A DNA stretch of 64,000 bases, taken from Macrostomum lignano. Lineage: Eukaryota. This document shows positions 724 to 64,000 of the stretch, one piece after another. Numbering within the stretch: the first letter of the stretch is position 1; each line of letters begins with the position of its first letter. The DNA lies in the NCBI GenBank assembly GCA_002269645.1, contig NIVC01000161.1, forward strand, positions 1 through 64,000, read 5' to 3'. Made by a program: the position numbers and the translations under genes. Below the pieces are notes generated by a model. It worked only from the letters and a program-made list of their open reading frames with translations, did not search any database and was not told the origin of the DNA.

Positions 724-1238
724 GCTTTGCTATCTCGAGCGAACAGGAAGCCCAAGACATGCAGGCTGCTCAGAGCAGCCTCAAACTGGCCAAGGACTGG
801 CTCAGGACAGCTGGTGACAGGCTCGAACCCCTGACCTCAACCGAGGCGGGCGACAAAGCCAGCCTAGCCAGCCGGCTGGACCGGCTGAACGATCTGATCA
901 ACTCGGAGGAGGAGGGCGCGGCCAGGATCCAAGCGGCCATGGAGGCGGTGCGCCGCGCCATGTCGGGGGCGTCGCCGGCCCAGCGGGCGAAGCTGCAGGC
1001 CGAGCTGGACGAGCTTCAACGAGCCTGGGACGCGCACAGGGAGCGGGCGCAGCAGGCCAAGGCCGATCTGGAGGACACGCTGGACAGGCTGGGCCGGGCA
1101 GAGGCGCTGGAGACGGACCTGGCCGCCCAGCTGGCAGCCATGGAGTCGCGCGGCCGGGAGGCTGGCGGCGCCAAAAACTCGCTGGATGAGAAGCGAGACC
1201 AGGTGGAGGCGCTGCAGCGGCTGCTGGACGATGTGCAG
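724..1238 (+). CDS. SR gene exon 1 (in window)
   Basis: Acceptor catgcag|, donor CAG|gtgagg; EQEAQDMQAAQSSLKLAKDW...LLDDVQ. 5' edge uncertain (alternative acceptor at 747). Confidence 0.85.

Positions 1239-64000: not shown

Follow-up and report, generated by a model that had tools for sequence, protein, structure and literature searches.

In the flatworm Macrostomum lignano, a giant nesprin-like locus is probably read out as more than one messenger RNA (mRNA), with one protein ending in a terminal exon at 29803-30942 and a further product drawing on a supported start at 58766 and the membrane tail that follows it. The window, by which we mean the whole stretch of DNA analysed here, is the first 64 kb of contig NIVC01000161.1 (assembly Mlig_3_7, GCA_002269645.1; bases 1-40942 were checked and found identical), and it is one copy of this locus, with a chain of spectrin-repeat exons on the + strand. 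Copies occur on at least four contigs, and exons diverge less than introns between them. An initial annotation, made from the sequence by itself, had proposed that the locus is segmented into sub-genes by hidden first and terminal exons lying in its long introns. This proposal is partly supported: the end in the 29803 exon is real and the internal start with its tail is well supported, the candidates at 15789 and 60230 fail, and an operon-like reading of the locus has a low probability.

The end at 29803-30942 (+ strand, 379 codons and a stop) is documented by public proteins. A second protein search returned a cluster of M. lignano proteins that includes NCBI PAA89195.1 (BOX15_Mlig001789g1, 2,097 residues), whose sequence is encoded exactly by exons of the window between Met 5686 and the stop at 30942. 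In the public model Mlig001789.g1, which is RNA-based and was seen like the rest of the deposited annotation as coding sequence (CDS) ranges, 26723-27133 is joined to 29803-30942 and the model then ends. Furthermore, the paralog models P0009 and P0011, which come from two further copies, share this stop, and indels between copies within the exon total multiples of three. The exon has no credible donor; the automatic predictions P0007, P0013, and P0014 leave it through weak internal donors, which score -2.0 and -6.6. The lack of a usable donor therefore marks 29803-30942 as a genuine 3'-terminal exon. It is also the longest open reading frame (ORF) running from an acceptor to a stop outside the tandem arrays, bar the ORF at 54817, which is part of a real exon. 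Its tail is of low complexity, with two TQT strings, a His run, and Pro and Gln runs; Pfam assigned no meaningful family to the ORF. The initial annotation was thus correct that this is a protein end, and what does not stand is its description as hidden, since it was already annotated. No gene is called in 30943-40942 of the window contig. The terminal exon would yield a CH-plus-rod protein with a disordered tail, a step of the proposed mechanism that we regard as demonstrated. The rod from 35182 onwards would then be reached either by skipping the 29803 exon (27133 to 35182, both phase 0) or from an internal start of its own.

The second set of evidence concerns an in-frame ATG at 58766, which extends the exon 58877-59074 upstream into its intron (58766-59074 in all), and two small exons that lie downstream of it. 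The equivalent ATG opens an annotated gene in the paralog contig NIVC01000393.1, where the CDS of PAA83966.1 (Mlig005304.g1, 115 residues) begins, and conservation starts at the same point. Upstream of 58766 the copies are 19.5% diverged with many indels; from the ATG there are two substitutions in 111 bases (1.8%) and no indel. An exact look-up of the 107-residue ORF of the window (58766-59086) found no record. Downstream, a candidate membrane tail is spread over two exons and reads DESTNANKSNILRKLAVLLLV from 59174-59236 (phase 0 to 0, with a poly-T acceptor and a gtaagt donor) and LLLLLVLLPFILLTCMFLSADCLLTVYRLLPPRSVY followed by a stop from 59387-59497 (acceptor score 9.7). The first of these exons is one of only nine decoy-type internal exons in 42 kb of intron and has no differences from the paralog in 63 bases; the second has two in 111, both synonymous. 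Over the block 59174-59497 there are 3 differences in 324 bases, compared with about 9% in its flanks, 99 bases on the 5' side and 203 bases past the stop (Fisher p = 1.7e-6), so that this block and 58766-58876 stand out as conserved islands within introns that are 9-20% diverged. The hydrophobic stretch AVLLLVLLLLLVLLPFILL reaches a mean Kyte-Doolittle value of 3.46 as a 19-mer maximum, and just one of 67 decoy ORFs reaches 2.5. The length of the 59387 ORF (36 codons) is unremarkable taken alone. As judged from its residues, the candidate tail fits the pattern of a tail-anchored protein, with a single hydrophobic helix less than about 30 residues from the C-terminus, 18 residues after it, and no signal peptide. 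Conservation and paralog annotation together support, and do not prove, a start at 58766 and a membrane tail. A short unit may start at ATG 58766, and the hydrophobic exons 59174-59236 and 59387-59497 can serve as a C-terminal anchor. Spliced to each other, start and tail would encode a tail-anchored protein of 160 residues; alternatively, the tail could close a long rod isoform with a membrane segment. The exons from 60347 onwards would be joined by skipping the tail (59074 to 60347), or may form a further unit.

Several observations weigh against this reading of the locus. The paralog model Mlig005304.g1 runs unspliced through the donor at 59074, so the splice to the tail exons is not supported by it, and the predicted P0016 skips the tail and joins 59074 to 60347. 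The intron that separates the two tail exons matches them in conservation (1 difference in 150 bases), which would also fit local gene conversion. The KASH profile PF10541 found no match in the tail at E <= 1, Pfam assigned it no meaningful family, and the tail ends ...LLPPRSVY, without a terminal PPPX. The canonical KASH arrangement of a helix and a luminal PPPX peptide was accordingly not found in 59174-59497; for the proposed stop-ending exon at 59387, the conservation and its place as the second of two tail exons stand. In addition, tiny ORFs and CDS starts placed at the first internal Met show that the public annotation is fragmentary in this repeat-rich locus, and the window copy carries two frameshifts that may be assembly errors or the real decay of a duplicate.

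The nesprin-like identity of the locus, which had been proposed from the start, is confirmed by the spliced product, which matches Spectrin at 104 bits and Spectrin_SYNE1 at 62.4 bits against a cut-off of 35. Single exons gave weak Spectrin matches, a 1,179-residue spliced segment gave strong ones, and a second segment reached 43.5 bits; SR_desmoplakin_3 appeared only as faint. A protein search with the 1,179-residue segment identified the M. lignano protein P0001, which is 96% identical and carries CH domains. These domains lie outside the window: the paralogs P0001 and P0015, which are continuous with the window exons, carry PF00307 and two CH-like sequences, and since the contig begins inside the gene, the 5' part with the CH domains is beyond the contig start. 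Assignment to the spectraplakins (MACF1/dystonin/Shot), which a UniProt name mentioning GAR had suggested, was rejected, with no plakin, EF-hand, or GAR match in Pfam among the scanned exons and segments; the 3' end of the locus is beyond the window. The downstream 2,395-residue product of the paralog lists spectrin families only. Also set aside were the UniProt names that describe P0007, P0008, P0012, P0013, P0014, and P0016 as GAR, KASH, PH, or FHA ‘domain-containing’, which contradict one another and have no backing in Pfam; for example, the names ‘GAR’ for P0007 and ‘KASH’ for P0008 have no counterpart in the Pfam results. A protein search with exon 57129-57899 gave no matches, and an Rfam scan of the window found nothing.

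The closest comparison is with the vertebrate genes for nesprin-1 and nesprin-2 (SYNE1 and SYNE2), which are multi-isoform loci (Rajgor et al. 2012, PMC3388047). Like the locus in M. lignano, these are giant genes that combine CH domains with spectrin repeats, in which internal termination gives KASH-less N-terminal proteins, and in which internal starts give short C-terminal proteins anchored in membranes, as the flatworm candidate might be. There are also differences: the flatworm tail has no recognisable KASH (neither PF10541 nor PPPX), it lies in the middle of the chain with further spectrin-repeat exons downstream, and a deposited model backs only one alternative end. If the supported parts are true, a flatworm nesprin-like gene shares the SYNE1/2 strategy of making an N-terminal product that lacks KASH and, from within the gene, a short one anchored in a membrane, and its non-canonical membrane tail would bear on LINC-type anchors outside the classical models.

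Public annotation of the paralog copy gives some indication of how the locus may be divided. In the series of genes called there, the first ends at the same stop as 30942, and the second encodes 1018 residues with a CDS that starts from a Met in the equivalent of exon 36933-37256. These are followed by five ORF ‘genes’ of 64-71 residues inside the giant repeat exon, then by Mlig005304.g1, and finally by the 2,395-residue gene, with a CDS from the Met equivalent to 60443. Annotation in M. lignano rests on short-read assemblies that were divided at leader and poly(A) sites located by measurement (PMC5730564). Because the cuts follow measured sites, they may be real. The likeness to the units cut by TBONE in this species (Wudarski et al. 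2017, PMC5730564) is that a paralog copy is split into consecutive genes on the same strand. The proposed segmentation into sub-genes thus fares unevenly: RNA-based annotation of the paralog does cut near the suggested boundaries, but the cuts may be assembly breaks. The locus is under-annotated and fragmented in public annotation.

How much of this segmentation is genuine depends on the alternatives. One of them, which we regard as possible and still rather unlikely, is that the locus forms one giant gene in which 29803-30942 is the only genuine alternative 3' exon and all other boundaries are artefacts, chance ORFs, or breaks of short-read transcript assembly at minisatellites. It is favored by the 41% of intron bases that lie in tandem arrays, by the tiny ORF ‘genes’ and first-internal-Met starts already described, by the abundance of ATG extensions (14 of 38 acceptors) and of stop-ending ORFs, by the direct join from 59074 to 60347 in P0016, and by the failure of 60230 and 15789 on comparison with the paralog. 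It does not readily accommodate the conserved islands at 58766-58876 and 59174-59497, where the tail exons change only synonymously, nor the separately named unit that opens at the equivalent of ATG 58766, nor a 19-mer in the tail of a strength reached by one of 67 decoy ORFs. Another alternative treats the copy in the window as a duplicate that is redundant and decaying, with its two frameshifts and the CDS start at 5686 reflecting pseudogenisation. The M. lignano line DV1 has a large chromosome in duplicate. Relative to the copy NIVC01003634.1, one G is missing after base 741 in the first exon of the window (at about 742) and another in the run 5074-5076, there are the several contigs with copies of the locus, and 180 Mb of the assembly is in blocks that are at least 95% identical (PMC5730564). 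The two deletions break the frame and so account for the late start of the deposited CDS, at Met 5686. However, both indels are in G runs, as is typical of long-read consensus errors, the remaining chain of 6,900 codons is open, including the 6.9-kb repeat exon, and between copies exons differ less than introns. We consider decay improbable.

A further reading arises from the biology of the host, which is a trans-splicing flatworm, as the initial annotation had supposed. The spliced leader of M. lignano, CGGTCTCTTACTGCGAAGACTCAATTTATTGCATG, is 35 nt long and ends in ATG (PMC8629364), and this final ATG is considered to act as a start codon (PMC10468722). Trans-splicing affects 30-39% of the genes of this species, and about 7% of its assembled transcripts are precursors that encode at least two proteins (PMC8629364, PMC5730564). 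For Schistosoma mansoni, translation of some mRNAs begins at the leader AUG, on the evidence of Cheng et al. (2006) insofar as it is relayed in PMC9851317, and internal acceptors that follow long introns take the leader (PMC5832876). The S. mansoni case resembles this one in having a flatworm leader that ends in AUG and is usable when in frame; for this locus the likeness amounts to a possibility from host biology and phase arithmetic alone. By that arithmetic a leader AUG would be in frame at 29 of 36 acceptors. On this account the locus would be an operon-like array, in which a long precursor is divided by internal polyadenylation and by leader trans-splicing at phase-0 acceptors such as 35182 and 60347, giving a chain of sub-mRNAs that start at the leader AUG and end as the protein with the TQT tail, the 160-residue mini-protein, and the rod units. 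In its favor, the acceptor at 60347 (TTTCAG) fits the trans-acceptor motif [T/C]TNCAG and lies 850 bases past the stop codon of the tail. The motif also fits 58877, but neither 35182 nor 36933, and as it occurs at 11 of 38 acceptors overall it does not discriminate. The paralog CDSs start at internal Mets with the frame open in the 5' direction into the intron, which is better fitted by transcripts that begin upstream of the acceptor, and several leader sites are found in just 0.2-1.4% of genes in sister species (PMC10468722). A search for the leader sequence in the window found it absent. The known operons of M. lignano (PMC8629364) offer a likeness in that repeats inflate the distances between units, and a difference in that they join unrelated genes, whereas here the units would be pieces of one modular rod and their cuts may be artefacts. 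Taken together, a chain of leader-started sub-mRNAs from one precursor appears doubtful. Transgenesis in M. lignano and the public leader and poly(A) tracks make internal use of the leader AUG directly testable.

The remaining ends suggested in the initial annotation exist as sequence features: the ATGs at 2020, 23922, 41788, 58766, 28525, 34488, and 43622 are where they were described, as are acceptors followed by an ORF to a stop at 15789, 29803, and 59387, and the first exon at 724. Some of these features are ordinary in this locus. Of 38 acceptors, 14 have an in-frame ATG extension, as do 18% of decoy AGs, and stop-ending ORFs behind acceptor-like sites are plentiful, with 218 at a score of at least 6, of which 133 have at least 30 codons. 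Start exons of the form ATG..GT in phase 0, with at least 10 codons and a donor of at least 6, are rarer: there are only five, including 28525 and 43622. The ‘targeting motifs’ ascribed to the ends are low-information strings, and no profile supports any of them.

The stop-ending candidate 15789-15890 (+ strand) is an ordinary ORF of 33 codons, in which both differences from the paralog change an amino acid and which is not in PAA89195.1; on its sequence, it is most likely a chance ORF. In the paralog equivalent (L004 32371-32390, window 15789-15806) the sequence reads cag/GATCTGCTGGAG/GTGAGC, a possible 12-base micro-exon, and the consensus donor is missing in the window copy. The in-frame ATG extension at 60230 was discarded as it is out of frame in the paralog, and Pfam gave no meaningful family for its ORF or for that at 34488. 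The latter, a candidate first exon at 34488-34790 (+ strand) with a 100-codon ORF beginning MGNKPG, stays open in the paralogs, which differ from it by a 6-base indel that keeps the frame and by a K-to-R change; its phase-0 donors are weak (2.1 and 4.0). Two sites have better splice-site scores and could be cassette exons, both on the + strand. That at 28477-28590 (ATG 28525, acceptor 9.4, donor ACG/GTAAGG at 6.4) has no differences in 114 bases from two paralog copies in flanks that are about 1.8% diverged, which is not significant; that at 43598-43753 (ATG 43622, with poly-Q and KRRR, acceptor 8.2) has a CAG/GTAAAG donor at 8.4. The extension at 2020 and its neighbouring intron are identical in the paralog, so the comparison there is uninformative, and more generally the copies are too alike around 2020, 23922, 41788, and 28477-28590 to discriminate. 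As ends, 2020, 23922, 41788, 28525, 34488, and 43622 are unsupported. Poly(A) hexamers lie 500-700 bases past the stops and are likewise uninformative.

The exon chain that underlies these comparisons was traced with a codon model trained on obvious exons and a dynamic programme that considered every GT and AG site and preserved the reading frame, with hand correction at four places (exon 35182-35300, donor 42462, exon 58877-59074, and the undivided giant exon 47315-54242). The curated trace has 38 exons and 37 GT..AG introns in 6,936 codons without a stop. Small exons of the first automatic trace at 28558-28590, 34500-34555, and 43434-43962 were dropped after reading the sequence, and the donor of exon 18202 was set by PAA89195.1 at 18366, not 18360. 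The traced donors score at least 5.3 except for two, at 0.4 and 1.0, one of which belongs to a 77-base ‘intron’ at 5019-5095 with the worst donor of the set. This intron was rejected: paralog proteins read across it as 78 coding bases, VDDWLADFEDRLGQCGDGRGDRFEIQ, and the window has lost one G in the run 5074-5076.

The same trace bears on the intron phases, which were the main numerical observation of the initial annotation. Its count of 37 introns, with 30 in phase 0, seven in phase 2, and none in phase 1, was reproduced exactly by our independent trace, but removal of the false intron brings the total to 36 and the phases 0/1/2 to 29/0/7. The excess of phase 0 had been taken as the sign of a rod built for swapping cassettes. 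The same distribution is found for AG/G sites inside the exons, so no design is needed to account for it. With the giant exon excluded, AG/G occurs 230, 17, and 47 times in phases 0, 1, and 2 (78, 6, and 16%), and CAG/G 85, 3, and 21 times. Against the AG/G expectation the observed introns give a chi-square p of 0.30, and the probability of zero phase-1 introns is 0.12, as opposed to 7e-6 under a generic phase-1 share of 28%. The last codon is CAG at fourteen phase-0 donors. The predominance of phase 0, with some phase 2, arises because AG/G is placed in a codon stream rich in Q, E, and K and in codons that start with G; the phase bias is a by-product of codon content, a mundane cause that carries no signature of design. 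The proto-splice-site account of intron phase bias is established, and its likeness to this locus, where intron phases mirror exonic AG/G phases, is one in which we found no difference. The dominance of phase 0 does mean that exon skips and a leader AUG are compatible with the frame.

The exons themselves, all on the + strand, are supported to different degrees. For those from 724 to 5777 the validation comes from paralog proteins. The first, 724-1238, is a spectrin-repeat exon traced in agreement with the paralog proteins P0009, P0010, and P0015, in which the G missing after 741 shifts the frame. In another copy, the NCBI model Mlig032159.g1 (P0010) has a CDS that runs from the ATG of the acceptor string ATGCAG/GCT (window 718-723), and so that transcript model begins in the intron just 5' of exon 724. 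Exons 2092-2568, with the in-frame ATG 2020 in its upstream intron, 2885-3307, and 4318-4584 follow in the trace and the paralog proteins, each phase 0 to 0, and then a single coding exon, 4737-5253, which spans the false intron according to both the paralog proteins and the DNA comparison. Fifteen exons, from 5421 to 30942, are confirmed by residue-level agreement with PAA89195.1. They open with 5421-5777, in which the CDS of that protein begins, and close with 29803-30942; the thirteen between them, all identical to the protein, are 6053-6389, 6708-7171, 7425-7683, 9758-10858, 11570-12007, 12715-12924, 13639-13926, 15219-15371, 18202-18366, 18467-18787, 22516-23013, 24069-24485, and 26723-27133.

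Beyond the terminal exon, 35182-35300 (phase 0 to 2) and 35648-35858 (phase 2 to 0) are read from the sequence and are present in the predicted P0007, P0013, and P0014. The exons 36309-36811, 36933-37256, 38047-38320, 38815-39129, 40352-40693, 41914-42462, 45162-45614, and 47009-47154 come from the trace and are in silico only, save that a paralog gene call starts in the equivalent of 36933-37256. After the repeat-rich and beta-rich exons described below, the trace continues with a spectrin-repeat exon at 57132-57992 (phase 0 to 0) and, past the unit at 58766 and its tail, with the spectrin-repeat exons 60347-60622, 61583-61906, 62477-62848, and 63921 onward, as far as the window end at 64000; the paralog counterparts of these four fall in the separate 2,395-residue gene call. 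In the intron after 60347-60622 there is a candidate micro-exon of 30 bases (60718-60747, phase 0-to-0, acceptor 12.8, donor 10.0), which is not in P0016.

Simple repeats contribute to the protein as well as to the introns. An open frame of 2,339 codons on the + strand (47259-54275) contains the giant exon 47315-54242, whose 6,928 bases encode about 130 tandem units of 11 residues (period 33 in the tandem-repeat program TRF). These are of the ASPARSVPSAE type and then of the ASPTREVPSAE type, with an AVVIEEGQSTE spacer. The exon is open throughout in the window copy, the paralog annotation has only the five tiny ORFs there, and its 3' end is present in P0016. It is followed by a beta-rich, non-spectrin coding exon at 54814-55944 in the trace, for which the acceptor may be 54814, 54817, or 54943, each in phase 0. 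This segment has four similar stretches of the form ..V.VN....L.PGD...L..G and a remote relative in P0019 (from an ENA contig) at 34% identity; Pfam found nothing in it, though UniProt names P0016 ‘FHA domain-containing’.

G+C content along the window is patchy, from 36 to 64%. Most of the long introns (1265-63814) hold a distinct minisatellite of their own, with periods from 16 to 99 bases. Of the 24 introns that reach 500 bases, 18 contain TRF arrays, which make up 41% of intron bases overall, and several of the arrays, for example 18848-20992, are open in all three frames and mimic long ORFs.

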